DNA from: Stegostoma tigrinum
Taxonomy: Eukaryota
Length of the DNA stretch: 64,000 nt
NCBI RefSeq assembly: GCF_030684315.1
Contig: NC_081374.1
Span: 12,264,837-12,328,836 of the forward strand
Reading direction: 5' to 3'
Under the pieces are notes generated by a model, which saw only the letters and a program-made list of their open reading frames with translations, did no database searches and had not been told where the DNA came from. Shown piece by piece: positions 630 to 62,400 of the stretch. The translations under genes and the position numbers were made by a program. How positions within the stretch are numbered: position 1 is the first letter of the stretch; the number at the start of each line of letters is the position of its first letter.

Positions 630-682
630 TCACAGTTGAACGGAATGCAGCTGGCTTTGGTAGTCTTGCTTCCTCCGTCACG
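630..682 (+). CDS. Paralogue 1 penultimate cytoplasmic exon (xTVERNAAGFGSLASSVT)
   Basis: Acceptor ttttatttttcag, donor cg|gtaaga. 53 nt, phase 1 to phase 0, the same phases as exon 21858-21898 of paralogue 2, and it joins in frame to 4244. Confidence 0.65.
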
Positions 683-3600
683 GTAAGAAGATTCTATGTC
701 AAGCTCACATGATGACAAAAGGTCCAAGGCAACATTTGATAACTCTGATTGGATACAGCATGGCATGACAATCTGACTACATGACACTCGCACACGTGAC
801 CACTGATCACATGATGCTTAATTGCAAACATTAGTGCATTTACTTCAAAAAGGTCAGGTCACCTAGAGTTGCTCCTGGATGAGCCACTGTCTCACAGAGA
901 GAACTGAAAGGTCACAAGTGCACTGATGGTAAGGAAACATAGGGGTCAAAGATGAAGAAGCAATTTGTGGAGGGGAATCCAAATGGGAGGACCTGTTGTT
1001 TCAACATTAGCTAGAAGCGAATCATTGGAGAAGTGTTGGTAACTCATATTAATGTTCTGATGAAGAGTCATCTGGACTCGAAACTTAGCTTGCTTTCTCC
1101 CCATGGCCCACTGTCATTTCCGGTAACAAGGTGTAGCGCTGGATGAACACAGCAGGCCACGCAGCATCAGAGGAGCAGAAAAGCTGACGTTTCGGGCCTA
1201 GAGCCTTCTGAAAAAGTGATCTCCAGCATTTTTTTCTGTTCTCAGTTAATGCTAGTAACATTCAGGTTCCCCTTGTAAGTGAAAGCCATAAAATAATCAT
1301 TGATAGTCCTAAAATAATTGGCATTATTAGGTGTGACACCATAATATCTTGGCTATGACTAGTCATAATCCTCAACCCACCAATATTCACCCTGAAACCA
1401 CAGATGGATTCCTGTTGTTGAAAAAGATGCAGCCAGGCTCCCGCTTTTAACAGACATGCTCTGTCCCATAGGAACATAGAAACACTGGAACAGGAGTGGC
1501 CTATTCAGCTACCATTCAATACAATCATGGCTGATTAATTTTTTAATATCTTGTCTGTATAACCCTACATGTTGTTGGTAAGCAGAAATCTGTCAATCTC
1601 TACCTTAAACATTAGACAATAGACAATACGTGCAGGAGTAGGCCATTCTGCTCTTTGAGCTAGCACCACCATTCGTTACGATCATGGCTGATTATCCACA
1701 ATCAGTATCCTGTTCAAATATTGTCAAATATTGAACTCCCACAGTCCCATGTTGTAGAGAATTCCAAAGGGTAAAAACCCTCTGAGTAAACCCTTCACCC
1801 AGAGATTTGTGAGCGTATGGAATAGTTTACCAGTGGTAGTCGTGGAAGTGGAGTCATTAGTGACACTTAAGCGACTGCTGGACAAGCACATGGACTGCAG
1901 TGAATTGAGGGGAATGTAGGTGAGGTTATTTTATTTTTGGATTAGGATTATTCCATGGCACAACATCATGGGCCGAAGGGCCTGTACTGTGCTGTACTTT
2001 TCTATGTTCTAAAATCATTTCTCCTTGTATTGGACCTAAATGTATTTCTCCTTATTTTTAATTTGTTTCCTTTGGTTTTGGACCGCCAGGCCAGAGGAAA
2101 CATTTGACCTGCATCTACTCAGTCTATCCATTCAAGTATTTTATCAGTTTCAAAGAGATCATATCTCATTCTTTGAAACTTTTGGGAATATGGGCACAGT
2201 ATGCCCAATCTCTCTTCATAGGATATTCCTGCCATCCCAGAAGCAAATCCAGTGAACTGTCACTGCACTCCCTTTATAGAGTTAAGGAGAGGGAAATGAC
2301 ACAAAGTACTCTGGGTGTACTTAACCAAGTTCCCATACAATTGAATTAAGACTTTACTACTCCCGTGCTCAAATCCTCTTGCAATAAAGGCTAACATTTG
2401 ATTAGCCTTTCTAATAAATTGCTGTAGTCTTCTTAGAACTTGGTTCAATTTTTCTAGCTCCTTGTCAAGGAATTAAGAATGAGCTGTATACATCAGTCAG
2501 AGCTGACCTTTAGTTAGGCTTCACATAACAAAACCAACCATATCAAATTCACCTGAAGTGAGCAGAGAGATTGCAAATGGGAAAAGGAGGTTAACACAAT
2601 CCTCACAGGATGGCCAAATTATCAGGTTTATTCAAGAGGTTCCATAAATGCACAGGGAAAAGCTAGAGCATCTGCGCAGCCCCCAGCCATCTGCATTGCC
2701 ACACACTCCCAGGGCTGGGTTTGAGCAATTAGCTGTCATGAAGGAGCGAGTGACTTCTGAGTTTACTTATTTGGAATCTTAGAATTTTGCAATATAGAGG
2801 GAGGTCATTGGGCCCATTGTGTCTGTACCAGCTCCTGGAAGAGCTATCCAGCTAGTCCGAATTTCCAGCCCTATCCCTGCAGCCCTCTGAATTCATCACT
2901 TTCAAATATATATCCAGTATATGTAGTGAGTGCACATTCCTGGGAGCCAATAAATGGCATCCTTATTGGCTGAGTTTAAGGTGATTAGTCTGTCACTTAG
3001 TCTGTAGAGGGACACCCCTCGATAAGGTACAGCCTTGTTAATTTTTCTGTCCACAAGCGCATGCAGGGTTTCTTCTGAGGGCCCAATGGTGGAGATTGAC
3101 TGGCTGTCCAGGGCCTCATCTTCTCCTGAACCTGTTGAACAAGGATCATGGTGACGTTAATAGTTCAAAGCCTACCATGTGATTGATGTAGTGAAAGACA
3201 CAGGGGCCATGAAGAATGGATGCTTGAAACAGGGTTGTAAGAAGTGAAGACCATCATTGATTTGGTGCAGGAGTCTGAGTCCAGGAGGGGAGGGAGTTTG
3301 GGGTGCATGTGTCAGTTTACAATAAAATCTGAGTGGAATTTATCCCTGTTCTGTGGTGAGTTTGATGGTGGGGGGGGCACTTAACCATGAAGGAGAGAGG
3401 GAGGTGGGGACTGCCATTTTCCTGCCTCCCCTCCTTGATGAAATGCATGGTAGTCAGTCCCAAGGTTGACGCCATCACCAGGCAATGTCACTCTCAGGGT
3501 TTAAGCCAACAATGGGCCATGCATGGCTCTCTCAGGCCCCCAGAGAGGGCCCTCAGTTAAAGACAATCAGTGTCTTTGAGGACCTGATACAGGCAGTGGT

Positions 3601-4465
3601 GGAAGGGCAGCTGTGACCCACTGCACACCCACACTCTGCACTGCACCCCTTCCTCGCCATAGCTCCAAGCCCCGTTCTCCATGAACCTTCGCTCTCTAGT
3701 TGCCTGGGTGCAAAGACCTTACTGGACCTGGTGTGTCATACCACCACCTCCCAGCCGACGCTGCTGCTCACAGGAGCTGCCAGTCCACGATGACCCCCCA
3801 AAGTAAGTACCTGAGTGGTACTTAATGATTTTTCTGAAGAAGGGTCTTGACCCGAAACGTCAGCTTTCCTGCTCCTCTAATGCTGCTTTGCCTGCTGTGT
3901 TTATCCATGTTATCTCAGATTCTCCAGCATCGGCAGTTCCTACCATCTCAGTACTTAATGCAGCTGGCTTTGCCTAAAAGACAGGTGGAGGGGGCACTCT
4001 TGTGGCACAGTGGTAATGCCCCTACCCCTAGACCAGAAGGCTAAGTCCCCAACCTGCCCCAGAGTTGTGTAATAACATCTCTGAGCACAGAGATAGAAAC
4101 ACAGATTAAATAGGGGGTGGCCTAGCTGGCTAATTAGCCTTTGGGCAAGACCACTGTCCCCACATTTAAATACCCCTCTAGGATCTGATTAACATTGTTC
4201 CATTATTGCATTAACAGTTTCCCTTTTGTCTTGGTTTCCTCAGGAGGATACAACTGTGATGTATTCCACTGTGAAAGTGGTACCCAAAGCTGACTTGGAA
4301 AGTACTTACATTAACCTGCAGGATCTTCAATGTCAAGGAACAGCTAAAGACCAAAGTTCTTCAGACTCTGTAGAATATTCCACGATTGTCTTCAGATCAC
4401 AACGAAATAATCCAAAAGAGGAGCCACGTGTGCTTTCTCCAGGCAATGTCAACAATATGTCGTAA
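630..4465 (+). CDS. CD300/pIgR-like inhibitory receptor, paralogue 1, 3' part only (exons 630-682 and 4244-4465; upstream exons lie outside the window)
   Basis: Two phase-compatible exons encoding a cytoplasmic tail. Their layout and sequence match the last two exons of the complete gene at 12302-26125. The family call comes from that paralogy, since no Ig exon of this gene is in the window. Confidence 0.75.
1057..1088 (+). ncRNA. Minimal hammerhead ribozyme-like motif from a second Penelope-like family, probably degenerate
   Basis: CTGATGA-A-GAGTC-atctg-GACTC-GAAAC; perfect 5-bp stem II with a sequence different from the main family. Confidence 0.5.
1472..2430 (-). mobile_element. Degenerate CR1-type LINE 3' fragment with a younger + strand CR1 3' end nested at about 1793-2010
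   Basis: ORF 2260-2448 (KANQMLAFIARGFE...LIQLY); the nested piece ends in TGTACTTTTCTATGTTCT. Confidence 0.7.
3834..3863 (+). ncRNA. Minimal hammerhead ribozyme motif in a Penelope terminus (3828-3950)
   Basis: CTGAAGA-A-GGGTC-tt-GACCC-GAAAC-GTC. Confidence 0.6.
4244..4465 (+). CDS. Paralogue 1 terminal exon with ITIM-type motifs VMYSTV, STYINL, VEYSTI
   Basis: Acceptor ttggtttcctcag|GAG. Reads EDTTVMYSTVKVVPKADLESTYINLQDLQCQGTAKDQSSSDSVEYSTIVFRSQ...NMS*. Aligns with exon 25946-26125. Confidence 0.85.
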   Translation, partial: EDTTVMYSTVKVVPKADLESTYINLQDLQCQGTAKDQSSSDSVEYSTIVFRSQRNNPKEEPRVLSPGNVNNMS

Positions 4466-6094
4466 CTTCGAATTCAAACGAACCCCACTATACAATTTCT
4501 CAATAAGTTCGTACATATGAACTTACTGTTGTTTTAAAGCTATTTTTTGATAGATCTATTGAGTCATTCTGTTGAAAGATTACAGCATTGGCCCTCAACA
4601 CAGACTTGACTTCATTATTTCCCTTTTGAAATTTGCCATTATCATCTAAAATAAATACATCGTGCAGCCATAAAACACAAACATTCTCTTGCAAAGAGTC
4701 AGCCTGACTTGAGGCTTTGTTTGAAGTATACTTAGCCATGTCAGTTAAGAGGCTGTAGATATTCTAACGCTGGTTTCTTATGTTACTGAAGACTTTCCCT
4801 GTCTATTCCAGAAGTGCTCTCATTTCCTTATACTTTTGTTAACTTTGATGCTTGAAGTGTGGCAGCTAGCAAACAGAAACATTTAAAGACATGAGACATA
4901 TAGTTTTATTCTTTTATCAGTTGTAACTTTGGTGGAAATTATTTGACCACATCTGTTTTGTTTCATGGATGTGTAAATAAGTTGTCTATAGAATTAAAAT
5001 AAATACCGATACTGACTGCAAATGTGAAACCAGATATAAAGTATTGACACAAAAATAATTGTCTACTTCTGTGCACATCATTTGGGAGGTATTTCCCATT
5101 AACCTCTTCAAACATGTTATTGAATAACTCTGGAACAGACGTGACTTGAACCTGAACCTTCTGGTTCAAAGGTATAGGCATTACAATTTTGCTACAAGAA
5201 TCTCCATACTTACAGATCTCAGCTCCAACAGATGAGCTATCGACGGGGAGTCACCACAAGTCCACTTTAGTGTTGGGTCTTCTACAATATTAAATAAGAA
5301 ACTGACCCAATAGCCTTTATTGCCACATGCACTCGAGTGAATGCAGTGAAATGTTTGTAATGCCACCTATTTGGCGCTATCTTACACACACGGTTCCTAG
5401 GTACAGATAGCTTAATGTTGTTAGAGTTGAAAGAGTAAAAGAAAGACTGGCACGGGAATACAAAATTTAAGAAGTCCGCAATGGGAATAAAAGGTATCTT
5501 TGAAATACTCAATTTATTCTCCTTCTCACTGACGCTGTCTACACCAGGCTTCACTGCCTTCACGTGCCGTCCTTCCTCCCGGACTCGTCTCCCCCACCGG
5601 CCTGGGCTCAATCTGCTCCCTATCGGGCCCCAATCCCCAACTCGGATCCCAGCTGAGCCCGTGCTCCGGCCGCAACTCGCTCCCAGGACTCGCCTCCCTA
5701 GTGCGCCCAGGCTTGGTCTGCTCCCACTCCGGGCTCTGGCTGTGACTCACTTGCCATGCTGGCCTGGTCTCGGACTTGACTCCCACTCTGGGCTGGACTC
5801 AGACTCGCGACCAACCTCCATTCCCGCCAGGTAAGGTCGTTTAAGAAGTTAAAATTTGTTGGGGGAGGTCGAGGAGAAAAACTGCAGTAAATGACAAGAA
5901 AAGGAATTGGCAGGTAGAGGAGTTCCAGCTGATGTGTTTTACTCTGCTCCTGATGAGAACAGTCCCACTTTTTCCAAAAAAGTATTTCTGTATAACTTTG
6001 CATTCATATTTCTAACGTCTTATAGACAGCACATTATTCCTTGGGTAAAGATAATGAACTGTGCACTGAGTGCCAATCACACTATGAAAACATA

Positions 6095-7217
6095 GATAAT
6101 AAAATGTGAGGCTGGATGAACACAGCAGGCCAAGCAGCATCTCAGGAGCACAAAAACTGACGTTTCGGGCCTAGACCCTTCATCAGAGAGGGGGATGGGG
6201 GGAGGGAACTGGAATAAATAGGGAGAGAGGGGGAGGCAGACCGAAGATGGAGAGTAAAGAAGATAGGTGGAGAGAGTGTAGGTGGGGAGGTAGGGAGGGG
6301 ATAGGTCAGTCCAGGGAAGACGGACAGGTCAAGGTGGTGGGATGAGGTTAGTACGTAGATGGGGGTGCGGCTTGGGGTGGGAGGAAGGGATGGGTGAGAG
6401 GAAGAACCGGTTAGGGAGGCAGAGACAGGTCGGACTGGTTTTGGGATGCAGTGGGTGGGGTGGAAGAGCTGGGCTGGTTGTGTGGTGCAGTGGGGGGAGG
6501 GGACGAACTGGGCTGGTTTAGGGATGCAGTAGGGGAAGGGGAGATTTTGAAACTGGTGAAGTCCACATTGATACCATTGGGCTGCAGGGTTCCCAGGCGG
6601 AATATGAGTTGCTGATCCTGCAACCTTCGGGTGGCATCATTGTGGCAGTGCAGGAGGCCCATGATGGACATGTCATCTAAAGAATGGGAGGGGGAGTGGA
6701 AATGGTTTGCGACTGGGAGGTGCAGTTGTGTGTTGTGAACTGAGCGGAGGTGTTCTGCAAAGTGGCCCCCAAGCCTCCGCTTGGTTTCCCCAATGTAGAG
6801 GAAGCCGCACCGGGTACAGTGGATGCAGTATACCACATTGGCAGATGTGCAGGTGAACCTCTGCTTAATGTGGAATGTCATCTTGGGGCCTGGGATAGGG
6901 GTGAGGGAGGAGGTGTGGGGGCAAGTGTAGCATTTCCTGCGGTTGCAGGGGAAGGTGCCGGGTGTGGTGGGGTTGGAGGGCAGTGTGGAGCGAACAAGGG
7001 AGTCACGGAGAGAGTGGTCTCTCCGGAAAGCAGACCGGGGTGGGGATGGAAAAATGTCTTGGGTGGTGGGGTCGGATTGTAAATGGCGGAAGTGTCGGAG
7101 GATGATGCGTTGTATCCGGAGGTTAGTAGGGTGGTGTGTGAGAACGAGGGGGATCCTCTTAGGGCGGTTGTGGCGGGGGCGGGGTGTGAGGGATGTGTTG
7201 CGGGAAATGCGGGAAAC
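6095..7217 (-). mobile_element. Penelope-like retroelement, 5'-truncated (GIY-YIG endonuclease region plus 3' terminus)
   Basis: ORF 6411-7292 contains CNRRKCYTC and NVVYCIHCTRCGFLYIGETKRRL...FAEH; the terminus carries a hammerhead motif. Confidence 0.9.
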
Positions 7218-7410
7218 AATGTGTTTAACAAGGGGATAGGAGCAGCAGATTGATAATCTCTGCCCATCTTCTGATGGGAATATGCACACCATACCATTAG
7301 TTATTTTCGTATTTCTGTTCCTTTCTGGAATTGGATATCCAGATACAACAATCTTAACTGTGGCCTAACCCCACTGTCTGTGAGAACGGTCACTGTAACA
7401 GTTTCCATCA

Positions 7411-8274
7411 GAGACTCCCTTGTCCGCTCCACACTGCCCTCCAACCCCACCACACCCAGCACCTTCCCCTGCAACCGCAGGAAGTGCTACACTTGTCCCC
7501 ACACCTCCTCCCTCACCCCCATCCCAGCCCCAAGATGACATTCCACATTAAGCAGAGGTTCACCTGCACATCTGCCAATGTGGTATACTGCATCCACTGT
7601 ACCCGGTGCGGCTTCCTCTACATTGGGGAAACCAAGCGGAGGCTTGGGGACTGCTTTGTAGAACACCTCCACTCGGTTCACAACAAACAACTGCACCTCC
7701 CAGTCGCAAATCATTTCCACTCCCCCTCGCATTCCTTAGACGTCATGTCCATCCTGGGTCTCCTGCAGTGCCACAATGATGCCACCTGAAAGTTGCAGGA
7801 ACAGCAACTCATATTCCACTTGGGAACTCTGCAGCCCAATGGTATCAATGTGGATTTCACAAACTTCAAAATCTCCCCTTTCCCCACTGCATCCCAAAAC
7901 CAGCCCAGCTCGTTCCTGACTCCCTAATCTGTTCTTCCTCCCTCCTCAAGCTGCACATCCATTTCCTACCTACTAACCTCAACCTGCACCCATGACCTGT
8001 CTATCGTCCCTGGACTGACCTATCCCCTCCGTACCTCTCCACCTACACTCACCTCTACAGGCTCCATCCCCGCCCCTTTAACTTGTTTGTCTCTCTCCAC
8101 CTATTTTCTCCTCTATCTACCTTCGATCCGCCTCCCCCTCTCTCACTATTTATTTCAGAACCCTCTCGTCATCCCCCTTTTCTGATGAAGGGTCTAAGCC
8201 CGAAACGTCAGCTTTTGTACTCCTAAGATGTTGCTTGGCCTGCTGTGGTCATCCAGCTCCACACCTTCTTATCT
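7411..8274 (+). mobile_element. Penelope-like retroelement fragment, more diverged copy in the opposite orientation
   Basis: ORF 7484-7789 has GIY-YIG motifs; same 3' terminus with CTGATGA...GAAAC at 8182-8206. Confidence 0.88.
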
Positions 8275-8714
8275 CCATCAATAGAACTTTTTTTGTGGTC
8301 CATTGTGCCATCTAGTGATTATTTGAGAAACTGTCCAAAAAGCATGTCTTGAATGCTTTGACAACTTTAACATGTAAGTTTCTGATTAGAAAAGATTAAA
8401 GCATTTAATTGCTGAACAGGTCTCTGAAAAATATTATCTTATTTTTTAATAACAATGATTCAGACTCACACTTCCTCCATCTTTATTTTGTATCCCACAT
8501 GAACAGACCTCTAAAGGGGAGAGGATGGCCAAAGATGTACAGGGTCTCCCTTCATCTAACAGTTACTTACCAGCTCAGTGGGTAAGAAACCTGAATCTCA
8601 CTCGGTCAGTTAAGCACTTTAGTTACTATTAATGTTTTTTTAGGATTAATTTTCCAAGATCGAAGCAAGTTAACTGCAGAAGGCCATCAGGAGCTGATTT
8701 CCCAGCATTACATT

Positions 8715-9410
8715 AACTCATTAGGGTACGAGTCCATAGCTCCCTGAGAGTAGCCACGCAAGTAGATAGGGGGGGTAAAAAGGATGTACGGCTTCTTGCC
8801 CTTATTGGTCGGGGATTTGAGTACAAGAGTCAGGATGTAATGTTGCTTTATAAAAGTTTGGTTAGGCCACACGTAAAGTATTGCATTCAATTCTGATTGC
8901 CACATTACAGGAAGGATGTGGAGGTTTGGGAGAAGGTGCAGAAAAGGTTTATCAGGATGTTGCCTGGATTAGAGGGTATGAGCTATAAGGAGAGGCCAGG
9001 AAATCTCACAATGTTTTCTCTTGAGTGGCAGAGGCTGGGAGGAGACTTTGAAGAAGTTTAAAAAATGGAGATACATAGGCACAGTTGATGATTGGAATCT
9101 TCTTCCCAGGGCTGAAGACGTCTAATACGCGTGCATTTAGACTGTGAGGGGAAAGTTCAAATGAGACATGGGGGCAATTTCTTTTACCACAGAGCGTGGT
9201 AGAAGTTTGAAACGTGCTGCCAGGGGACGATGGTGGAGGCAGGCACAATAGGGGCGTTTAAGGGACTTTTAAATAAGCACACGAATATGCAAGGAATGGA
9301 CGGATATTGACCAATGGCAGGCAAAAGGGATTAGTTTCATTTGATATCATGTTTGGCACAATATCGTGGGACAAAGGGCCTGTTTCTGTGCTGTACTCTT
9401 CTAAGTTCTG
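8715..9410 (+). mobile_element. CR1-type LINE 3' fragment
   Basis: Frameshifted YRKDV..LEKVQ.RF.RMLPGL homology and a 3' tail similar to 9872-10452. Confidence 0.8.
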
Positions 9411-9871
9411 TGACCAGATCACCCCAACACAGTTGTTTTCCTTCAGGCTGTAAGCAGTTTTGGAGAGTGTACTTTATTTTAATAATAAATTGCTTGATGC
9501 TTATGAACATGCACCAATAAAATTTAACGATGCATCTTCTCATTTGGAGCAACAGAGGAATTGAACCGATTAAAAATTAGTTCAAGTTCCACGTAGAATG
9601 CCCTCTCCAGCATGATAAATCATAGATCTGTATGTAATAAATGAACAACATGGTTTACTGATTTCAATAAAAAGCTAATCAATGGAGGGTCTTGCAGTGT
9701 AGTGATAGTGTACCTACCTCTGAGCCAGGAGGCCCTGGCTAAAGCCCCATCTGTACCTGAGATGTTTAACTACATCTCTGAGCAGGTGCTTTAAAAGTAT
9801 GTAAAATGTTGAACATCTAATACAGCACCAGAATAAGTGGCACCTGTGGAGACAACTAAAAGTCAACATTT

Positions 9872-10452
9872 CGACAAATCTGATGTCATGCTGCAACTGT
9901 ACAAAACGCTAGTGCGGCCTCATTTGGAATATTGCGTGCAGTTCTGGACGCCCCATTACAGGAAGGATGTGGAAGCATTGGAAAAGGTGCAGAGGAGATT
10001 TACCAGGATGTTGCCTGGTCTGGAGCGCAGGCCCTATGCAGAAAGGCTGAGGGACCTGGGTCTGTTCTCATTGGAGAGAAGGAGGCTAAGAGGGGATCTA
10101 ATCGACACATTCAAGATGACCAGAGGATTAGAAAGGGTGGACAATGAGAGTCTTTTTCTAAGGATGATGACTTCAGCTTGTACAAGGGGGCATAGCTACA
10201 AATTGAAGGGTGATAGATTTAAGACAGATGTCAGAGGCAGGTTCTTTACTCAGAGAGTGGTAACGGCATGGAACGCCCTGCCTGCCAATGTAGTTAACTC
10301 AGCCACGTGAGGGGCATTTAAACAGTCCTTGGATAAGCATATAGATAATGATGGGATAGTGTAGGGGGAGGGGCTTAGATTAGTTCACAGGCCGGTGCAA
10401 CGTCGAGGGCCGAAGGGCCTGTTCTGCGCTGTATTGTTCTATGTTCTATGTG
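9872..10452 (+). mobile_element. CR1-type LINE 3' fragment, relatively young
   Basis: ORF 9837-10310 (LYKTLVRPHLEYCVQFW...FFTQRVV); tail TATTGTTCTATGTTCTATG. Confidence 0.92.
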
Positions 10453-10699
10453 CTAAATCATTAATATACTCGAACAGTTGTAGATTCTCCTACAAGAGGA
10501 AACATCCTTTCCACGCCAACCCTCTCTGGATCTTGTAAGGTTCTATCAAGTCACCTCTTAGTTTTCTATACTGCAGCAAATCCAAGCCTGGCCACTCAAA
10601 CCTTGCCTCATGAAACAACCTATCTGTGCTGGGATTAGTCTTGTAGACCTTCTGATTTCGCCAGTCTTCGTGTGGATTAAAATTCCCATGGCCGGGATA

Positions 10700-11860
10700 T
10701 CGCTGCTTTAGACAAGACAGAGGAGGAAGCAAATGGGGTGAAGATGTCACATTAGGTTAGGGAACATACCACTGCTACATTGAGGGAGGATTCCTTGGAA
10801 TGATGTTGCAGCAAGGAATTATGGTTACAGCTCAGGAATAGGAAGGGTGCAATCACAATGCTGGGATTGTATTACAGATTTCCCAGCCGCCAACAGGAGA
10901 TGGAGGGAGAGGTATGTAGTCAGATTCTGGAAAGATATGAAAATACCAAGGTAACTTCCCCCCCTATTTACAGGAACTCCTTTAGTACTGCGGGTTTGGA
11001 AGTATGTTAGCGAGGTGTATCCAGGAGAGTTTTCTGAAACATTATGTGGATAGTAGCTACAGGACCTGGTACTGGAAAATTAGCTGGGCCAAGTGATCAA
11101 AGTTTCAGTGGGGGAGCATTGTGGGAACAATGACAATAATTCCATAGAAGTTTTCAAATACTTATGTATAAGGACAAGAGTGGACCTCGGTTGATGCTGT
11201 TGAATAGGGAAGGCTAACTAAGGTAATTACTCAAGAACTGAGCATGGGAGTGGCTGTTTGAGCATAAATCCTCATCTGACGTATGGGAGTCTTTTAAGGA
11301 CCAGTGGACTAGAGTGCAAGGCAGGCATATTCCTGCAAAAATGAAGAATGGGAATGGCAAGATTCAGGAACCTGGGATGATAGGGGAAATTGTCAGGTTA
11401 GTCAAAAAGAAAAGCAAGCATTTCTAAGGTCTAGGCAACTAAAAACAGAAGTCTTTGAAGAAAACAGTGAAAGTATGAAGGAGCTAAAATGGGGAGTTAG
11501 AAGGGCTAAAAGGGGCTATGAAATATCCTTGGCCAGCAGGGTTAAGGAAAATCCAAAGGCATTTTATACATCTATTAGGAACAAAAGAATAGCTAGGGAA
11601 AGAATAAGTCCATTCAAAGATAAAGGACGGAAGTTATATGTGGAGCCAGAGGAAATGGCTGAGATCCTTAATGAGCACTTTACATGTGTACTCACCAAAA
11701 AGAGGGATGTGAGAGATATTGGCGTTAGAGGAATTGGCATGAATACTCTCAGGCAGGTCAACATAATGAAGGAGGAAGTGTTGGGTGTTTTGAAATATGC
11801 TAAAGTGGGCAAGACCCCAGGGCCAGATAGGATCTGTTCAAGGAGGCAAGGGAGGAAATA
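10700..11860 (+). mobile_element. Degenerate CR1-type LINE ORF2 internal fragment
   Basis: ORF 11475-11861 (KENPKAFY..I..KR, K.PGPD.I). Confidence 0.75.
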
Positions 11861-12067
11861 AAAGATTTGAAATCTGATTAACTCAAGACACTGGATCCAA
11901 CAAACCTAAAACACCTCAGTTTGAGATGCTATGCAAACAGCTAAGTGAGAGTGCCCCTCCAACACTCTCTCAAAAGCAATTGCCAATGAACCTATCCCTC
12001 AAATTGAATTAGTGTTCATGATCAAAAAAAATCCGTCTGAATTGCTTTTCTACATTTACTTATTTTT

Positions 12068-12301: not shown

Positions 12302-12341
12302 ATGAAGTTCACTGCACTGCTGGTCCTCAGTCTGATATCAA
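12302..12341 (+). CDS. Paralogue 2 exon 1, leader peptide MKFTALLVLSLIS
   Basis: accATGa Kozak-like context, hydrophobic core, phase-1 donor A|gtaaga. Confidence 0.85.
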
Positions 12342-15300: not shown

Positions 15301-18300
15301 AAGGGAGTGTGAGGTGTAACTACCTCTTAGCAACTTCTAGCGGTTAAATAAAACAAATCCCAGGCACCCACTTTAAAATCAACAAGTCGCAATATATTTA
15401 CCAACTCTAACACTGAACAATTTAACTAAACTATTAACAAATTGAATAAATCCTTTCTGGTACTAACTATTCCTGAATAAAATGAGATTCTAATGGTGTG
15501 CTGTTCCAATAAATTTAAGTCCTACTTATATCAAAAAAAAATTAGGATTTAGTCTCTCAAAGTTACAGCCAGGTTACGGAATGTTCTGTGCCTTCTCCAT
15601 TGATTCTTTTATCAGGAACATTAACCAGTTGTGCCATTGGTACTTTTGTCATTTAGATGGTGCTTTCCCGAAGATATAGAAGGGGCTGTGAGGGCCAGCA
15701 ATTCTCTCTTCGGAGCTGAGGGCTGTTAGCTGTGGCAGGTAGTAGCTAGCACTGCTGTCTTTGTCCACTGCCCCCTCCTTTTTATACCCTTGATGACATA
15801 TCAATATTCCTTACAATAAGGTTGGTCCTATGTTGTCAAAACCAAGAGATTTAAATTTGAGATAACAAAGTGTGGAGCTGGATGAACACAGCAGGCCAAG
15901 CAGCATCTTAGGAGCACCAAAGCTGACGTTTCGGGCCTAGACCCTTCATCAGAAAAGGGTCTAGGCCCGAAACGTCAGCTTCTGTGCTCCTAAGATGCTG
16001 CTTGGCCTGCTGTGTTCATCCAGCTCCACACTTTGTTCTCTGTATACTTGCAAACCTTTGAGCTGCTGTACACAGACATCTACTTTAAATTTCTAAGTAC
16101 AGAAAAAACACATGATCTTGTAAAGAGATCATGCAATGCTTCCAACCCCCACCATTCACCTAGCATTTTACAAACATCAAATTCTAACTACATGCCTCCC
16201 AATTCACAAGTACTTTATCCAACTTCACAACACTGATGTGCTACAGAATATGAAAAGATCAACACAGGTCCCTGTATCCAAACGTTTCTGCAAAATTGTG
16301 TGACTAAACAACTTTGAGTAGGTGACCATCTCACTGATGTTGGCGTAAGACACTGCTACCATAGGATTCATACATGAAGGGTTTTGGTCAAAGATATGTT
16401 CAATTTTGTTGAACAACAAGTAGGTTTATTACATATTGCTTAATAGCTAGTTACATTGCATCTATGATACCTGATGGTCTCCTGTGAGAAATTAGCCTCA
16501 ACTTGAGAGTGAGCACACTTTACTGCCACTGAAACATTCTGGTACACAACTTAAAATAAGTGATCGACTCCATATCTGGTGTGGTAACCTAAAACAAGAA
16601 CTAGCCTGCTCCTCCCAGAAACAGTCCTTTAAGCATTTTCATTGGAGTTATGGAGAACAAGAAGGAATTACCAAACTTGGACAAACATATCTCCTAGGTA
16701 TAGTGGAAAATATACACAATTAAAAATGTAACATGAACAACAAAGAACACAAGAGCTTTCAATGCTCACACTGGGCTCTATGTCTCTAAAATTCTGTTTG
16801 TATTTCGAAACAGAAAACATTTTTAACATTCTCAAAAGTTACCTCATTTATTTTAGTTTTTTTGTAATTAAAAATATTCAGCTTTTCTTCATTCTTTAGT
16901 TTTAATGACTTTCTTTTTCACATTTACCAACAGATTCAGAGGAATCCATCCCAACAGAGATCAATAATGTAATGGAAAATACCACAACTGTTTCGTGTCT
17001 GTACACACAACAGGAGGAGATAGACTATAAGAAATTCTTTTGTAAAGTAACCTCTGTAAATAAGTGCACTGTTATCGCCGATTCAAACAAAAATATAGGA
17101 AACGAGTATAAAGGGAGAGTTTCAATCATGACAAACAAGTCTCAAAATTTTACAATCACCATGAGTAATACAAGTAAAGCAGATGAAGGACAGTACTGGT
17201 GTGGATCAGTAAAAATAGATGACGTAAAGATCACACAGGTTAAAAACCTGACAATTGCTAGTGGTAAGAATCAACTTGTAATTATTATAATTCAGTTGGT
17301 CATCCATAGCACTTGACAGAATAGACACACTTGGTCACTACCAGTGTTCATGCTTCACAAGCACCTTCTCCAGCCCCATGTCATTTCACCCTTACAACAC
17401 GTCCTTCTATTACTCCACTATATCTCAATGTGTTTCCTTCACTACCCGTTCTTGCCTCAAGGACGTCCTGTATGAATAAGTTCAGTATTTTGCAACTTCC
17501 ACATTCTGATCATTCTCCAGGTAAAGAATATTCTGCCTGAAGTTCTTATTGAATATTTAGTGACTATTTTAGATTAAAGACGTCCAGATTTTGCCTCCAC
17601 TGTAAATGTGGACATCCCTGCTTTTCTCGTTCACAGGGACATGGGTAAGGCCAGGTTTTATTGTCCATCCCAAATCACTCTTGAGAAGGTGATGTTGCTA
17701 TCTTCTTGACCACTGCTGTCACATGAGGTAGGAACACCTCCTCAAAGGGTGGAGTTGTTAGGGACAGAGTTCTTGGATCTTAATCAGTGACAGTCAAGGG
17801 TGTAACCCTAAATCTTGATAGGATGCTAAACATTCACGTACCCTAGACTTCAGTTAAATTATTATTTGCTGTAATATATAACACATAGCAAATGAATCAG
17901 TATCTGAAATTAGATATAAAACAGACATTGTAATTACTTTCAAATAATACCCGTTCAGGACGAGCAATCCATGTCCCTGGTTAATTACTCTTTCTTCCAG
18001 TTCTTGGCCCAGTGCCGTATATCACTCCAGTCATGGAAGAAGGAGGGAAAAGATATTGAGGCAGATTTGTGGTAAATTCACCCACATTTTTGAATGGATC
18101 CTCAAGTGCCACACTGGACAGTGAGGTGTACTGTCGCATTTCCATGCACAAGAGGCAAAGTTTGCAGAGGGTGTGGTCATGGCCAGGTGATTTCAGCCAC
18201 TCTGGGTGGGATCTTCCCTGCTCTGCATGGTGGTGATTGGGGTGGTAGGGGAGGGGCATGCAGAGAGCTTTGGTTCAAGTCACCTCTGACTGCTGTCCCA

Positions 18301-21300
18301 CCTTCTGGATGAATTTCCCTGGGCAGGACCCCATAGGAATCATCTACCCACTTCCGTGGGGCTATAAATAATAATGAAGCCAACTAGGAGTTGACAGAGC
18401 AGGTATTTTCAAAAGCCAGTGGCATTTTTCTTGGTGCTGGACCATCCCATTCTCCATGAACCAGTGAGGCACAGGTCCAGCAACTATGTGCAGTTGATCT
18501 CCAAATGACAGGCCTTGAGGCTATGACAGTCTCCACCCAATCCCTAATTCATGGAAACAAATAGATATAAGAGCCACTTTTACAGCACTAATTCCCCTCC
18601 CCTCTGAGGGCCCTGACAGATGTAGACTTCCTTTATTTTTAAATTCCCCCAAGGGCTGCTAGGAACTTCTCCATTTCACACTGCCCTAACATTACCCGCT
18701 GCCTTTCCTCCCACTGGCTCTCCCTCAAATCCAACTCTCCATCATTTCCTTTTCACAAGATTTCATGACCCTATAAAGACAAAGACATTCATTCAACCAA
18801 TTCTTGTTTACCATCCTGAATTTGAGCAATTGCCTTAAGAAATCTTAAACAGCTGGTGTTCAGAATTACTGAATATATTCCCCCTCCACCAATTGCCTTC
18901 AGGAATCTTAAACAGCTAGTGTTCAGAATTACTGAATATATTCCCCCTCCACCAGTGAACCTCCCATACCACTCAACATACCCCCCTCCCTCCACTTCAT
19001 CCTCACCAGTCATCATTCCCCTTCCTCTCCTCCTGTATCCCTCCAAAACAGAACCCTTCCATTCACCTGCACCAGTCACTACCCTCCTCTGCTTCATTCC
19101 CAAAACCAAATAAACCGCTCCCTCTTGCCACACAACTGCCAAACATCCCCCCCTCCCATCCACCCCCAATCAACCTCTACGGTGCTTTCTTTGGTCGTGT
19201 TAGAAGGAGCAAAGTTATGCTTGTATTGTTGATGGTTTTCTGTTATTCATCCAGTTATTCATTCATGTTTCTTTGCAACAGAGGGGATTCCAGCAGTTTC
19301 CATTGACACCCCAAGGTAACATTTTAATAGTTTTCTTAGAATAATCATTTTTGGGTCATTCTGATTGAAGTTGATGTATACTTCCGGTCTCTTGACCATA
19401 CACAGCGATGTTAGGTAATAAAAACGGGCTCTTACCCTTTTTGGTGCCATATCTTTCCTCACGATACTGCTCCTAATTGTTTTTCCTTAATTAATACCAC
19501 TGTCAAAGGCAGGTAGCAAAGTTTACATAGGTCATGGCAGCAATCATTCAACTGATAATAAGCTTTGTATTCCCCCTTATTTCTCATTTCTGTTCACTGT
19601 GAGAAAGCTGCACTTCACCCTAGTGCATTATTCGTTCACAAGCTGTGGGCATCATGGACAAGGCCAGCATTTATTTCCCAGCCTTCACTGACCTTGAGAA
19701 GGTAGCAGTGAGCCACACTCTTGAGCTGTTGCAGCCCACATGGTGTCAGTACTTCCCACAATTTTATTATGGAAGGGAGCTCCAGGATTTTGAAGGAATA
19801 TAATTCAGTGTCAAGATGGTGCATGTCATGGAGGGAAAGAGGCAGATGGTGGTGCTGCCTTTATCTTTAGAAGGGGTAGACGTTATGGGTTTGGAAGGTA
19901 CTGCTAAAGAAATTTTTACAGGTTGCTGCAGTGCATCTTCATGAGAGAGGTAGAGGCACAGGAATGTAACGCATCTTCCAATTCAGAGATAATTAGGTTT
20001 AAAACCAATTCCTCTATCTAGTTTACATCCAAAAAGTGTTTGTACATTTTTGCATTGTTCTATTGAGTCCTCAAAGCTTTAATTTTATCAGTTCTGCTTC
20101 ATTTTCTTTTAGCAATATCACTCCGCAAAAATGGTACATCATCCTTGCTGTTTTGTTGGGACTGTTAATCTTATCGCTGCTGATTCTGTTTACGTGGAAA
20201 AGAAAAGTGACAAAACGAGCAGGAAATGAGGGTATGTAGCCAAGGAAATATTTTTCTGCAATAAATCAGCATGTAAAATCAGAAACTGATTCCTGAACAG
20301 ACAATAGTAAAATGTTGATATAATATTGAAAATACTTACAATCCAATCAGAAACAAATAGGGCAAAATTGTCACTGTTCTACACAAGTGATTTGGGAAGT
20401 AGGACCAGGAGCAAAGGTACAAAGTAGTGTGTAGGTTTGGCTACCAGAATCCTACCCGCCTCAGAGTGCTCTTGCACAAGGTGGGTTAATGTGGCAGAAG
20501 CTATCACCACATACGTAACTTATACTCAAGTAGGACCATTAGAGTGACAACCTGGCAAGTCTAACTTAAGTATATTTTTGACCTAGGTCCAAGAGCAACA
20601 GGTTACTGAAGAACAGCTCCTGGAGCTAATGCTGAGGGCCATCGATACCTCCAGTCATTTAACCCACTGGGATGTTTGGACTCAGTTTGTGCTATTTGCT
20701 TACAACGACAATTAAATGGCGAAATTACTTCTCCAAAGTCTGACCTGTTGCAATCATTTATTAGGCTTCTTGTGCATAATGTGTCCAACTTCTTGGCCAG
20801 GAGGCTTGGGTTCAAAGATGCATACTAACATCTTTCATCATCATTGTATCAAAATTCTGGAACTCCCTTCCTTTCAGCTCTGTGGAGTACGTACTCTAAA
20901 TGAGTTGCAGTAAGTCAAGAAGACGCGTTCTCCAGGCACACAGGGATGCTCATGGAATGTTGGCCTCACATCCCATGAACAAATATTCTCAGACAACAGT
21001 GACATGGTGCCAAATCAGGATGCCGTTGTAGGTTGGAGGGTAACTTGAAGGTGGTACTATTCTGGTGCAAGACCACCTTTGTCCTTGTGAATGGTAGAGG
21101 TTATGGATTTGGAAGGTGCTGTTAACGGTGATGTGGAATAGCTTGTCAGTGCAACTTATAGCTGATACACAGTTTGCTGGAAAAGATGGGAGTGAACATT
21201 TAAAGCTTCAAATGTTTTTACAGTATATAATCTCAGAATTATTTCAAAATCCATCATCCACTATCTTTGTTAAACATTTTATAAAGAATGAAATGAGTAA

Positions 21301-24300
21301 AATCAAAACATCTAGAGTAAACTGATGATCGTATATACACTTTAGAAAAACATCTGAAGTAATTTAATTGATTGAAGGCTGAGATTTGGTCTTGCTGATT
21401 TGGATTAAACTCTAGCATGCCTCCATAATTTACAATATAATTTGAATTTCTATCTTGTAAGATATGCATTGCATTGGAAGCAGTGAAGTGCTTGCATGCC
21501 TCAGAGTTGTCACACAATGTTTTCAGAAACAGGTTACCAACATTAGCAGATGAAATTAGCGGAGTTGAAATTATCAAGTTGAAAGACAGAGCAAACCAAA
21601 AATTTTCCTTAACATCTTGAAGGAAGTGGTTTACCATCATACAGCTCGGAAATAGCAAGTAATTGGGGCTTCCTGTAGTAGGTTAGAAGAACGTGGTTGG
21701 CTTGATGCGAGTGGCTGAGCGTAAGTGTGAAAGAGAGTGAGAGATTGAGGTTTTTGTAGTGGTTTATATTTCAAACTGGAATAAATCAAAACTATTGTGG
21801 CAAGAATGAATGAAAGTAACCTTGTTGGAAGTGAATCATTTCTTATTTACTTTGCAGCTAAAAATGAAAATCCAGAAATCCCAGACATGACTAGAAAGGT
21901 AAGAATAGAAGGTATCTAAAACTATGGCTATTGTTCCACTTATCTCACAATTACGCTCTGAAGCATTACATTTATTGGGTGTTGAAAACCGCCATCTCCA
22001 ATTCCCCTCCAAATCATACACCATCCTGATGTGCAACTATATTGCTGCTTATTCACTGCTACTGGATTAAACCTAGAAACTCACTTCCTAACTGCACTGT
22101 GGATGTATCCACGTCTGAAAGACTGCAGCAATTCAAATCAATCAGCTCACCATTATATTCTCAAGGGCAATAAAAGATAGGCAATAAATGCTGGTCTAAG
22201 CATCTGATGACAGAATAGAAATTGAATTTTGACAAGATACTCCAGTGATAGACTCTAATAAGGTTCAACGTCATGGGATTAAAGGAAAAATTGAAGTAAA
22301 TGTGGAATTACTCTCATCCTCATAGACATACAGGCAAGCGTTGCAGCAAGAGGTTCTGCTCAGAGAAGTTGACTTGAATCTCGACAGTCTGTCTAGCATT
22401 GGTTCACCCTTAATTCAGTTAGGGAAGGAATTCGAGTATTTGTCCCAGTGCCAGTGAAGGGATATGTTCCAAAACAGGATGGTGTGAGCCTTGGAGGTGA
22501 ACCTGCATCTGATGCAGTTTAATTTCTAGGTGGTAGGCTGCTGATTTGGAAGCAGCTATTAGACCATAAGACGTAGGAGTGGAAGTAAGGCCATTCGGCC
22601 CATCAAGTCCACTTCGCCATTTAAACCATGGCTGATGGGCATTTCAACTCCACTTCCCTGCACTCTCCCTGTAGCCCTTGATTCCTTCTGAGATCAAGAA
22701 TTTGTTGATCTCTGCCTTGAAGGCATCCAACGTCCCGGCCTCCGCTGCATTCCGTGGCAATGAATTCCACAAGCCCACCACTCTCTGGCTGAAGAAATGT
22801 CGTCTCATTTCAGTTTTAAATTTACCCCCTCTAATTTTAAGGTTGTGCCCATGGATCCTAGTCTCCCCCCGCTAACGGAAACAACTTCCTAGCATCCACC
22901 CCTTCTAAACCATACATTATCTTGTAAGTTTCTATTAGATCTCCCCTCAACCTTACATGAGTACAATCCCAGGATCCTTAGCCATTCATCATACATTAAA
23001 CCTACCATTCCAGGGATCATCCGTGTGAATCTCCGCTGGGCACGCTCCAGGGCTAGTATGTCCTTCCTGAGGTGTGGGGCCCAAAATTGGACACAGTATT
23101 CTAAATGGGGCCTAACTAGAGCTTTATAAAGCCTCAGAAGCACATCGCTGCTTTTATATTCTAACCCTCTTGAGATAAACGACAACATTACATTCGCTTT
23201 CTTAATTACGGACTCTACCTGCAAATTAACCTTTAGAGAATCCTGGACCAACACTCCCAGATCCCTTTGTACTTCTGCTTTGCGAATTTTCTCACCATTT
23301 AGAAAATAGTCCACGCCTGTATTCTTTTTTTCAAAGTGCAAAACCTCACATTTACTCACATTGAATTTCATCAGCCATTTCCTGGACCACTCTCCTGAAC
23401 TGTCTAAAATCTTTCTGCAGCTTTCCTACCTCTTCAGTACTACCTGCCTGTCCACCTATCTTTGTATCATCAGCAAACTTCGCCAGAATGCCCCCAGTCC
23501 CTTCATCCAAGTCATTAATGTATAAGGTGAACAGCTGCAGCCCCAACACTGAACCCTGCAGGACACCACTTGTCACCGGTTGCCATTCCGAAAAGGAGCC
23601 TTTTATCCCAACTCTCTGCCTTTTGTCAGACAGCCAATCCTTAATCCAAGCCAGTAGCTCACCTCGAACACCATGGGCCCTCACCTTGCTCAGCAGCCTC
23701 CCGTGAGGCACTGTATCAAAGGCCTTTTGGAAGTCTAGATAGATAACATCTACTGGGTTTCCCTGGTCTAACATACTTGTTACCTCTTCAAAGAATTCTA
23801 ACAGGTTTGTCAGGCACGACCTCCCCTTAGTAAATCCATACTGACTTGTTCTAATCTGACCCTGCACTTCCAGGAATTTAGAAATCTCGTCCTTGACAAT
23901 GGATTCTAGAATTTTACCAACTACCGAGGTTAGGCTAATCGGCCTGTAATTTTCCATCTTTTGCCTTGATCCTTTCTTAAACAGGGGGAGTTACAACAGC
24001 AATTTTCCAATCATCTGGGACTTTCCCGGACTCCAGTGACTTTTGAAAGATCACGACCAAAGCCTCCGCTATTTCCTCAGCCACCTCCCTCAGAACTCTA
24101 GGATGTAGCCCATCAGGGCCAGGAGTTTTATCAATTTTTAGATCTTTTAGCTTTCTAGCACTTTCTCTTTTGTAATGCCTACCATACTCAACTCTGCCCC
24201 CGGCTTTCCCTAATTGTTGGCATACTACTCATGTCTTCCACTGTGAAGACTGACGCAAAGTACTTATTAAGTTCTTCAGCTATTTCCTTATCTCCCATCA

Positions 24301-26125
24301 CTCGCCTTCCAGCATCAGTTTGGAGCGGCCCAATGTCTACTTTTGCCTCTCATTTGTTTCTTATGTATTGAAAGAAGCTTTTGCTATCATTTCTAATATA
24401 ACTAGCTAGCCTACCTTCATATTTGATCCTCTCCTTCCTTATTGCTCTCTTTGTTATCCTCTATTTGTTTTTGTAAGCTTCCCAATCTTCTGATTTCCCA
24501 GTGCTCTTGGCCACCTTATAGGCTCTCTCTTTTTCTTTGATATATTTCCTGACTTCCTTTGTCAGCCATGGCTGTCTAAACCCACCCCGGATAATCTTTC
24601 TTTTCTTTGGGATGAGCCTCTGTACTGTGTCCTCAATTACACCCAGAAACTCCTGCCATTGTTGGTCTACTATCTTCCCCGCTAGGCTCTGCTTCCAGTC
24701 GATTTTCATCAATTCCTCTCTCATGCCCCTGTAATTATCTTTATTTAACTGTAATACCATTACATCCGATTTTGCCTTCTCTCTTTCAAACTGCAGACTG
24801 AACTCTACCATATTATGATCGCTGCCTAAGTGCTCCCTTACTTTAAAGGTCTTTTATAAAGTCTGACTCATTACATAGCACTAAGTCCAGAATAGCCTGC
24901 TCCATCACAAGCTGTTCCAAAAAGCCATTCTGCAAACATTCCATGAATTCCTTTTCTTTGGATCCACCGGCAACGTTATTCACCCAATCCACCTGCATAT
25001 TGAAGTCCCCCATAATCACCATTGAATGTACTTTACTGACAATGCTCTCTCCAAGTTGAGTAGAGAGAGTCACTGGGACATTTTGTGCATCCTGTTCAAT
25101 GTGCTGAAATGCAATGGCAAGAAAAGTGAGAAGAACTGTTTCTTAGCAAGTTGCTGCAGTGAATTTTAAAGGTGGTATACATTAACAGCTCTGTGTATCA
25201 GTGATGGAGCAAATATATGCTGAAGGTAACAAAAACAAGAAATGCTAGAGGTCAGCAGGATAGCACCATCGATAGCGATGGAAAAAATTGATCTACTGAG
25301 CTTCTCCAGCATTGTGTTTTTATTTCAGATCTCCAGCACCGCAGTATTCCATGTATTTGAATATTGAGGGTGTTTAATGGAGTGCCAAACATGTAGGTGT
25401 TTTGTCCTGGACAGTGCCACATTTCTTAAAATATTATTGAAGCTGCACTGAACAAACTAGGGGATGGGAGATATTCCAATATGATCACTCCTAACTTATG
25501 CCTTGTAGGCTGACAGGCAGCCAGAGTTTGGGAACTCTGTTTTGAGTAAGTGCAGTTTTGCATCCCCACTCTCCATCATCAAGGTCAGTTAGTTCAGTTG
25601 GCTGGACAGCTGGTTGCAAAGCAACAGCCACAGTGTCAGTTCACTTTTGATACCAGAAGCAGTCACCGACCTCAATCTCTCCCCTCACCCAAGTCATCAT
25701 GACCCTCAGGTTAAAGACCTTCTAATAAACACACAGCAGTCTTTCCCTCTGCAACTATGGTGACATGTTTTTACTGAGAGCTGCAATAGCTGTAGGGTTG
25801 ATTCAGTTCAGTTCCTTGACAATGGTAACTCCCAAATATTGATGGTGGGAGTTTCAGTGAGGATAATGTCATTCAATGTCAATTTTCATACTTTAGCACC
25901 ATGTCTTTGTTACTGGTCCAAATGTGATTGAGATGTTTATTTTAGTCTGACAGGGAAATGGAAGACACTGTCATTCATTCCACTATGACCCTTCAATCAT
26001 CTGCTCAAACAAAGGAAGATTCTGTAACTTATGCTAATTTAAAGGATTTGAAACAGCAAAAAGAGAACATCAACATCAATGCTTCAGAATCAGTGGAGTA
26101 TGCAGCACTGCAATTCAAATCATAG
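12302..26125 (+). CDS. CD300/pIgR-like two-V-domain ITIM receptor, paralogue 2; join(12302-12341,14818-15141,16934-17263,19282-19315,20113-20231,21858-21898,25946-26125), 1068 nt, 355 aa
   Basis: All introns are GT-AG and the phases chain 1,1,1,2,1,0 into one open frame. Encodes a signal peptide, two V-set domains with the extra Cys-x7-Cys pair typical of CD300/pIgR/TREM, a hydrophobic TM and two ITIMs. Confidence 0.88.
12933..13068. mobile_element. Short fold-back Penelope-terminus insertion
   Basis: Inverted arms of the Penelope end; TSD GAATAATACTGTT at 12916-12928 and 13069-13081. Confidence 0.8.
13500..14296 (+). mobile_element. Degenerate CR1-type LINE 3' fragments
   Basis: Nucleotide similarity to the other CR1 3' ends; ends in CCTGCTCC...TTCTTACGTTCTT. 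Confidence 0.6.
14818..15141 (+). CDS. Paralogue 2 exon 2, Ig V domain 1 (atypical, lacks the B- and F-strand Cys)
   Basis: Acceptor acaatag, donor G|gtaaga. Motifs GKNITVKF, IWCKTYSETRC, IFITMQPLWKNDTGTYWWG, LLKVF. Confidence 0.88.
15859..16041. mobile_element. Short fold-back Penelope-terminus insertion
   Basis: Near-perfect inverted repeat with arms of about 85 bp, centred near 15951. Confidence 0.85.
16934..17263 (+). CDS. Paralogue 2 exon 3, Ig V domain 2 (four Cys, CD300/pIgR type)
   Basis: Acceptor ccaacag, donor G|gtaaga. Motifs TVSCLY, KFFCKVTSVNKC, GRVSI, FTITMSNTSKADEGQYWCG. Confidence 0.92.
18827..18952. repeat. Tandem duplication, 2 x 63 bp
   Basis: CAATTGCCTT...TATATTCCCCCTCCAC occurs twice, with 3 mismatches. 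Confidence 0.9.
19282..19315 (+). CDS. Paralogue 2 exon 4, short stalk (EGIPAVSIDTP)
   Basis: tttctttgcaacag|...CCAAG|gtaac. 34 nt, phase 1 to 2, exactly the shift needed to link the V2 exon to the TM exon. Confidence 0.75.
20113..20231 (+). CDS. Paralogue 2 exon 5, transmembrane (WYIILAVLLGLLILSLLILFTW followed by KRK)
   Basis: Acceptor attttcttttag, donor G|gtatgt. 22 uncharged residues followed by a basic stop-transfer cluster. Confidence 0.9.
21858..21898 (+). CDS. Paralogue 2 exon 6, cytoplasmic (AKNENPEIPDMTRK)
   Basis: tttactttgcag|...AAG|gtaaga. 41 nt, phase 1 to 0. Confidence 0.8.
22560..25020 (-). mobile_element. CR1-type LINE, about 2.5 kb, from endonuclease to RT, frameshifted
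   Basis: ORFs with VIMGDFN, NYRPISLTS, YLDFQKAFD, QGSVLG, FADD and RPHLEYC; lies in the last intron of paralogue 2. Confidence 0.93.
25946..26125 (+). CDS. Paralogue 2 terminal exon with ITIMs VTYANL and VEYAAL
   Basis: Acceptor tttattttag|TCT. Reads SDREMEDTVIHSTMTLQSSAQTKEDSVTYANLKDLKQQKENININASESVEYAALQFKS*. Not in the ORF track (too short from its first ATG). Confidence 0.85.
   Translation, partial: SDREMEDTVIHSTMTLQSSAQTKEDSVTYANLKDLKQQKENININASESVEYAALQFKS

Positions 26126-39806: not shown

Positions 39807-62400
<22,594 letters not shown>

Follow-up and report, generated by a model that had tools for sequence, protein, structure and literature searches.

A two-V-domain receptor gene of the CD300/pIgR/TREM type with an ITIM-bearing tail in the shark Stegostoma tigrinum

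Exon structure and transcripts

We analysed a 64,000-nt stretch of the genome of the orectolobiform shark Stegostoma tigrinum (hereafter the window), with a GC content of about 40% and abundant interspersed repeats, in which a receptor gene lies on the + strand between 12302 and 26125 and a fragment of another gene lies ahead of it. We read the former, with a probability of about 0.8, as an intact and transcribed gene for a type I receptor of a chondrichthyan family with two variable-type (V) domains of the CD300/pIgR/TREM kind and with immunoreceptor tyrosine-based inhibitory motifs (ITIMs) in its tail. Exons were found by reading borders directly, by enumerating phase-compatible AG...GT intervals and by tblastn with homologues (P numbers below); searches, alignments and fold prediction took single exons or database homologues as input. 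The coding exons, together with an alternative exon seen in RNA, are the following:

12302-12341, + strand: leader exon, read from the sequence; ATG at 12302, encodes MKFTALLVLSLIS plus 1 nt, phase-1 donor
14818-15141, + strand: V1 (D1) exon, V-set, 324 nt, phase 1-1
16934-17263, + strand: V2 (D2) exon, V-set, phase 1-1
19282-19315, + strand: stalk exon, 34 nt, phase 1 to 2, encodes (E)GIPAVSIDTP(S)
20113-20231, + strand: transmembrane (TM) exon, encodes NITPQK-WYIILAVLLGLLILSLLILFTW-KRKVTKRAGNE
20587-20706, + strand: alternative exon, joint 20231/20587 with GT..AG, from a 1051-nt contig of run X9
21858-21898, + strand: cytoplasmic exon, 41 nt, phase 1 to 0, encodes (A)KNENPEIPDMTRK
25946-26125, + strand: last coding exon, coding to 26122 and then TAG, with two ITIM-consensus motifs

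The seven exons of the main form have AG/GT at all internal borders and add up to 1065 nt, that is, 355 codons followed by TAG. An earlier reading of this DNA, made from the sequence only (the sequence-only reading), had proposed a complete receptor of exactly this length, with a leader, two V domains, a stalk, an uncharged TM segment and an ITIM tail, and each of these parts was located in the window, together with the short cytoplasmic exon that precedes the tail. The product would comprise a signal peptide, a fast-evolving membrane-distal D1, a conserved D2 and a 72-residue tail. The membrane span WYIILAVLLGLLILSLLILFTW contains zero charged residues. In the tail, VTYANL and VEYAAL conform to the ITIM consensus (S/I/V/L)xYxx(I/V/L), and their tyrosines are 23 residues apart.

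Homology accompanies the small exons too. The leader exon is homologous by tblastn to the N-termini of family members P0006, P0002 and P0029, the stalk exon resembles the stalks of P0003 and P0160, and the TM exon has tblastn matches to P0004 and P0160. The cytoplasmic exon shows 85% identity to residues 281-293 of P0160, and the last exon 76% identity to the tail of the same protein. As a side observation, database models of relatives also differ in their exon content: in P0006, a Heterodontus isoform, the TM exon is skipped and the last exon is read out of frame (the same peptide is readable at 25944-25985 of the window), and P0165, an annotated Hemiscyllium isoform, is devoid of most of D2.

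Spliced RNA-type contigs from public runs were aligned to positions 16800-22000. Contigs from three runs (X9, X10 and X7), at 100% identity, carry the V1-V2, V2-stalk and stalk-TM joints; they skip 17264-19281 and 19316-20112, both with GT..AG ends, and directly ahead of V2 they contain the final 30 bases of V1. Since these window-identical contigs cross the joints, V1, V2, stalk and TM exons are spliced as modelled, and V1, which is devoid of the canonical cysteines, is retained in the mature RNA. The X9 contig has 444 nt ahead of V2, of which V1 accounts for 324 and the other 120 leave room for the 40-nt leader exon and a 5' untranslated region. In another run, X1, from a relative about 95% identical, position 20231 is joined to 21858, and 21898 is then joined to the exon at 25946 with one mismatch, which supports the path from the TM exon through the cytoplasmic exon into the tail. 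Of the predicted junctions that had been proposed for a search in RNA, those from V1 to the last exon were in this way recovered, the three from V1 to TM in the species itself and the last two in the relative. In V2, X1 differs by 13 base changes in 11 codons, five of them synonymous and six non-synonymous; these numbers are small and X1 is possibly a paralogue. The alternative exon at 20587-20706 contributes GPRATGY before a stop codon, so that the product has no ITIMs, and no second copy of this exon was found in the window.

V domains and chondrichthyan relatives

V2 matches the Pfam V-set family (PF07686) with E 7.4e-10, and V1 does so with E 1.8e-5 and 25.3 bits, the gathering score being 26. 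The best single-domain match of V2 in the PDB is CD300LF/CLM-1 (42 bits, E 7e-10), followed by CD300C, CD300A, NKp44, single pIgR domains and FcmuR, and the very low E-values obtained with full pIgR arise because the scores of its five domains, 10-24 bits apiece, are added up. V1 finds the same families (pIgR and CD300) in the PDB, more weakly. An AlphaFold2 model of V1, built from a 15-row family alignment, has nine strands and a mean predicted local distance difference test (pLDDT) score of 89.4, and its top Foldseek matches are NKp44, TREM2, CD300A (IRp60), CD300C, TLT-1, pIgR D2 and FcmuR. Both domains contain the extra cysteine pair between the C and C' strands (Cys35/Cys43 in V1 and Cys36/Cys44 in V2, exon numbering), which corresponds in the alignments to the WC...C cysteines of CD300 and the pIgR domains and is invariant or nearly so across the family alignment. 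The canonical disulfide between the B and F strands is present in V2 (Cys21/Cys89) and absent from V1, which has Phe at the B strand and Trp at the F strand; for this reason V2, along with the remaining features of V1, carries the family assignment. In agreement with the proposed placement in the CD300/TREM/pIgR/FcmuR group, the PDB matches, the C-C' pairs and the Foldseek results on the V1 model converge, and on sequence, and for V1 also on its predicted fold, both V domains are of the CD300/TREM/pIgR/FcmuR/NKp44 type.

As a word search misses full-length kin of a 107-residue query, relatives were collected with the V2 exon as the query of a full HMMER scan, which gave 771 matches. The closest ones are all chondrichthyan two-V proteins of 280-390 amino acids, labelled in RefSeq as 'polymeric immunoglobulin receptor-like' or 'CMRF35-like molecule'. 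Homologues of the same architecture occur in at least 15 sharks, rays and chimaera, including the sharks Pristiophorus, Heterodontus, Scyliorhinus torazame, S. canicula, Mustelus, Carcharodon, Cetorhinus and Heptranchias, the rays and skates Pristis, Leucoraja, Amblyraja, Hypanus, Hemitrygon and Mobula, and the chimaera Callorhinchus. The orthologues are a Hemiscyllium ocellatum protein (XP_060701239.1, 'CMRF35-like molecule 1', 352 amino acids) and two Chiloscyllium proteins in its 90% cluster, from C. plagiosum (XP_043572434.1) and C. punctatum (XP_072419274.1). Identity to the Hemiscyllium orthologue is 80-82% in V2, 58-63% in V1, 85% in the cytoplasmic exon and 76% in the tail. These hemiscylliid proteins share with the window gene the seven-part architecture (352 against 355 amino acids), a Phe in place of the B-strand Cys of D1, and the motifs VTYANL and VEYAAL, whereas the change of the F-strand Cys of D1 to Trp and that of the first tail Tyr to His are found in the window gene and not in them. 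The guess that the DNA comes from a shark is borne out by the nearest proteins, all of them elasmobranch and the closest from Hemiscyllium and Chiloscyllium. In searches with P0004 and P0160 a protein of the species itself was not among the matches, a result that says nothing on its annotation status there.

A domain tree was built with 59 domains over 108 columns, and its deep nodes are weak, as the alignment is so short. It recovers a clade of chondrichthyan D1 domains (support 94/87) and a clade of D2 domains (98/78). Since Callorhinchus is inside both of them, the two-domain design is older than the split between sharks and chimaeras. V1 and V2 of the window are each sister to the corresponding Hemiscyllium domain, with support 100/99. 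Among these 59 domains, in a tree with weak deep nodes, neither rabbit pIgR D1-D5 nor teleost pIgR-like proteins join the family with support. An association of the V domains with an already characterised single-copy orthologue, which the sequence-only reading had named as the outcome contrary to its proposal, was looked for and does not appear; judged by the tree, the window gene is not the orthologue of a characterised receptor. The tip branches of the window gene are 0.39 for D1 and 0.064 for D2, and D1 is the faster domain family-wide.

In all non-orectolobiform members of the alignment the D1 motif reads TVEC...YWCG. In the three hemiscylliid orthologues it reads TVQF...YWCG, so that the B-strand Cys is gone and the F-strand Cys is left unpaired, and in the window gene it reads TVKF...YWWG. 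As these motifs indicate, the canonical disulfide of D1 was lost stepwise, with the B-strand Cys changed to Phe before this lineage parted from the bamboo and epaulette sharks and the orphan F-strand Cys changed to Trp thereafter. One may ask if the gene is decaying, that is, if the canonical cysteines of D1 and one ITIM tyrosine were lost under relaxed constraint in a pseudogene in the making. The long D1 tip branch compared with that of D2, the D1 score below the Pfam gathering score and the Tyr to His change in the first tail motif would fit such a course. However, an open frame and intact splice sites are kept in all seven exons, the gene gives rise to correctly spliced transcripts, and D1, for which a V-domain fold is predicted with confidence (pLDDT 89.4), retains the C-C' pair and the family-invariant core Trp, Leu and Tyr positions; moreover, the replacement of an unpaired Cys is a change expected under continued selection, and the fast evolution of D1 is common to the whole family. 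Because the cysteines went stepwise with the C-C' pair kept, and in view of the confident predicted fold and the splicing, D1 seems to be maintained, and decay is extremely improbable.

Tail motifs, pairing and surroundings of the gene

The family as a whole conserves the tail motifs, and VTYANL and VEYAAL are kept in the hemiscylliid orthologues. Several observations nevertheless weigh against an intact receptor with an ITIM tail. One of three ancestral tail tyrosines is lost, since the window gene has VIHSTM where the hemiscylliids have VTYSNV. D1 falls marginally under the Pfam gathering score and is devoid of the canonical disulfide. Past the TM exon, own-species contigs show only the tail-less continuation at 20587, in one run (X9); no own-species contig leading from the TM exon to the ITIM tail was seen, depth on 21858-21898 is nil in X9, X10 and X7, and support for the ITIM path comes only from the approximately 95% identical relative and from homology. 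The X10 and X7 contigs stop within the TM exon. Such contigs are unable to rank isoforms, as minor or branching paths get dropped in them.

A possible explanation would be a main product that is dead for signalling: the tail-less form, ending seven residues past the TM exon, would act as a decoy or non-signalling binder, and the ITIM exons would be little used. The only own-species contig past the TM exon takes the exon at 20587, the cytoplasmic exon has zero depth in the three runs and the first tail tyrosine is already gone, all of which would suit it. But contigs lose minor and branching paths, and two of the three simply end in the TM exon. Furthermore, the cytoplasmic and tail exons are open, have canonical splice sites, keep 76-85% identity to the Hemiscyllium orthologue and encode two intact ITIMs, and the close relative of run X1 splices them. 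We therefore consider a signalling-dead main product unlikely and keep the ITIM-tailed receptor as our reading of the gene.

In other species the family includes siblings with near-identical ectodomains, an Arg in the TM segment (...IFRWLL...) and a short tail. ITIM forms and Arg-in-TM forms with common ectodomains were found in Scyliorhinus, Callorhinchus, Hypanus and Mustelus, and the D2 distance between ITIM and activating forms is 0-0.009 in S. torazame and 0-0.03 in Callorhinchus. As judged from these sequences, the family shows the classical pattern of inhibitory/activating paired receptors, the window gene being of the inhibitory type. Ectodomains are nearly identical within a species in the pairs P0166/P0038 (Callorhinchus) and P0159/P0161 (Scyliorhinus torazame), a likeness that points to concerted evolution of the paired receptors or to gene conversion between them. 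In the 64-kb window no Arg-containing TM exon was found by tblastn; one match to an Arg-TM exon like that of P0002/P0163, near 41100 on the minus strand, was rejected as a chance match in a fragment of a long interspersed nuclear element (LINE). The suggested pairing of receptors thus holds for the family, given both forms in other species; in the window itself only the inhibitory form was found.

These features also bear on whether the gene could be the shark functional equivalent of pIgR, a two-domain, teleost-like receptor that would bind polymeric IgM with J chain and transport it across epithelia. Most family members carry the name 'polymeric immunoglobulin receptor-like' in RefSeq, the summed PDB scores are highest for pIgR, and a similar two-V layout is seen in the teleost pIgR structure 5f1s, to which V2 matches at 54 bits. 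On the other hand, the high pIgR scores add up five domains; domain by domain, V2 scores 42 bits with CD300LF and 21-31 bits with pIgR domains. The tail of the window gene is an ITIM tail, and siblings with Arg in the TM segment and several copies per genome make a paired-receptor pattern, unlike a single-copy transporter. In addition, rabbit pIgR domains and teleost pIgR-like proteins are not grouped with the family with support in the tree, and a review argues that the shark J chain is poorly suited to binding of secretory component (PMC4279169). We find a pIgR equivalent very unlikely, and the inhibitory member of a paired-receptor family remains our reading.

For such a receptor, the following course may be proposed. 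D1 and D2 would bind a ligand, Src-family kinases would phosphorylate the two tail tyrosines, and the tandem-SH2 phosphatases SHP-1/SHP-2 or SHIP would dock on the phosphotyrosines and dampen activating signals in leukocytes. We infer ligand binding and inhibitory signalling, and with them the recruitment of phosphatases, the cell type and the nature of the ligand, from receptor design alone; gene structure, splicing, domain family, orthology and motifs were read from the data described above.

Upstream of the leader exon the window contains the end of another gene, with these features:

630-682, + strand: small cytoplasmic exon (53 nt, phase 1 to 0) predicted for the upstream gene, from splice signals and phase only
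4244-4465, + strand: last coding exon of the upstream gene, by homology, with motifs VMYSTV, STYINL and VEYSTI

The exon at 4244-4465 lies about 7.8 kb ahead of the leader exon in the shared orientation and has 42-49% identity to the C-termini of family members. Its best match in our local set is the C-terminus of P0022 (Heptranchias perlo XP_067863879.1; 49%, E 4e-13). The P0022 model has two V domains, TM and tail, after which come another signal peptide, a single V domain, TM and ITIM tail, and from this order it appears that the pipeline merged two neighbouring CD300-like genes into one model. As the best match is the C-terminus of this model, whose second half has a single V domain, the upstream neighbour belongs to a different CD300-like subfamily. 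The candidate at 630-682 is the best one by splice signals and phase in 1-4243, and its phases (1 to 0, then 0) equal those of the main gene; a motif search of 1-4243 found no KNENPE-like exon for the upstream gene, the rest of which lies 5' of the window start. In a DNA self-comparison of 1-12000 with the rest of the window only interspersed repeats were found, and the two tail exons (4244-4465 and 25946-26125) are too diverged for a match at the DNA level. In this sense, the tail exons that the sequence-only reading assigned to an upstream paralogue are real and in the same orientation as regards 4244-4465, but they belong to a different subfamily and not to a close paralogue, and 630-682 stays a prediction.

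A tandem array, also proposed for this locus, is not what the window holds. A six-frame V-domain signature scan of the whole window gave exactly two V-like exons, at about 14.8 kb and 17.0 kb on the + strand, and with tblastn added no third V exon was found on either strand in the 64 kb, so that there is one gene and one fragment. Between 26 and 64 kb we found LINE reverse-transcriptase fragments and other repeats and nothing else, which is consistent with a gene at the downstream edge of a cluster. The repeats located in the window are:

9837-10310 (+), 22889-23957 (-) and 27750-28688 (-): LINE reverse-transcriptase fragments, Pfam RVT_1, E 3e-25 and 3e-13
1124-1208, 3830-3949, 6094-6193, 8175-8275, 12969-13068, 15855-16041, 42506-42684, 58383-58555 and 59484-59632: short interspersed element

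One LINE fragment lies within the large intron that separates the cytoplasmic exon from the last one. The short interspersed element, of about 70-100 bp, is present in many copies, often as head-to-head inverted pairs. A large repeat has copies at 6083-8275 and 47041-49459, which are 92-97% identical and occur in both orientations; it contains an open reading frame of up to 444 amino acids (47286-48620, minus strand) with no Pfam match, where the stretch ...CGFLYIGETKRRLG... resembles, to the eye, GIY-YIG endonuclease motifs of Penelope-like elements. A run of 818 N, an assembly gap or mask, occupies 44744-45561.

Comparison with known receptors

Mammalian CD300 proteins (CD300A and CD300LF/CLM-1) have a V-set domain with the extra C-C' disulfide, as the window gene does, and their inhibitory members combine an uncharged TM segment with an ITIM tail, also as in the window gene, and have activating partners with a charged TM segment, as in the family described here. 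They differ in having one V domain instead of two spliced V exons, and identity is about 25-35%. Lipid ligands are a feature of CD300; named CD300 proteins are outside our domain tree, and the likeness described here is one of domain type. With pIgR the window gene shares V domains in tandem, which are of one subtype and all contain the C-C' cysteines, and teleost pIgR (5f1s) has two domains like it, whereas mammalian pIgR has five. The tail of pIgR serves transcytosis and that of the window gene is an ITIM tail. The family of the window gene further differs in being multi-copy with activating siblings and in not clustering with rabbit pIgR domains with support.

Within cartilaginous fishes, the modular domain immune-type receptors (MDIR1-5) of the clearnose skate (Raja eglanteria) are described as a multigene set of CD300/pIgR-like V-domain receptors with inhibitory and activating forms (PMC3031540, citing Cannon et al. 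2006, Immunogenetics 58:362). Compared by this description only, they are the same general kind of receptor as the window gene, and the two-V family may be a branch distinct from them. A search with the little-skate family member P0046 returned 'pIgR-like' models only, none of them named MDIR. With the skate MDIR family and many automatic RefSeq models of the two-V family at hand, the statement that this group is poorly characterised in cartilaginous fish was too strong. Our literature searches on shark CD300, pIgR-like or CMRF35-like proteins and on the two-V family found nothing specific, and they found no experimentally characterised shark Fc or poly-Ig receptor. It is tempting to think that the inhibitory/activating two-V pairs are the missing receptor system for IgM, IgW and IgNAR in cartilaginous fishes, with the fast and disulfide-less D1 contacting the immunoglobulin, an idea that we nonetheless hold to be decidedly unlikely.

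The family itself was already known from automatic annotation in bamboo and epaulette sharks and, as orthologues are predicted by pipelines, the single gene as such is ordinary. What is new is confined to small details: a D1 disulfide lost in two steps, the fast D1, one lost tail tyrosine and the tail-less splice form. What is gained is that one member of an old chondrichthyan paired-receptor family is now documented with splice evidence. The two-step loss of the disulfide in D1 constitutes a small natural experiment in the stability of immunoglobulin domains. Additionally, the domain type is common to the CD300 lipid sensors and to the IgM/IgA receptors pIgR, FcmuR and Fc-alpha/muR, and the family is therefore a reasonable place to seek shark antibody receptors or sensors of dead cells and lipids.

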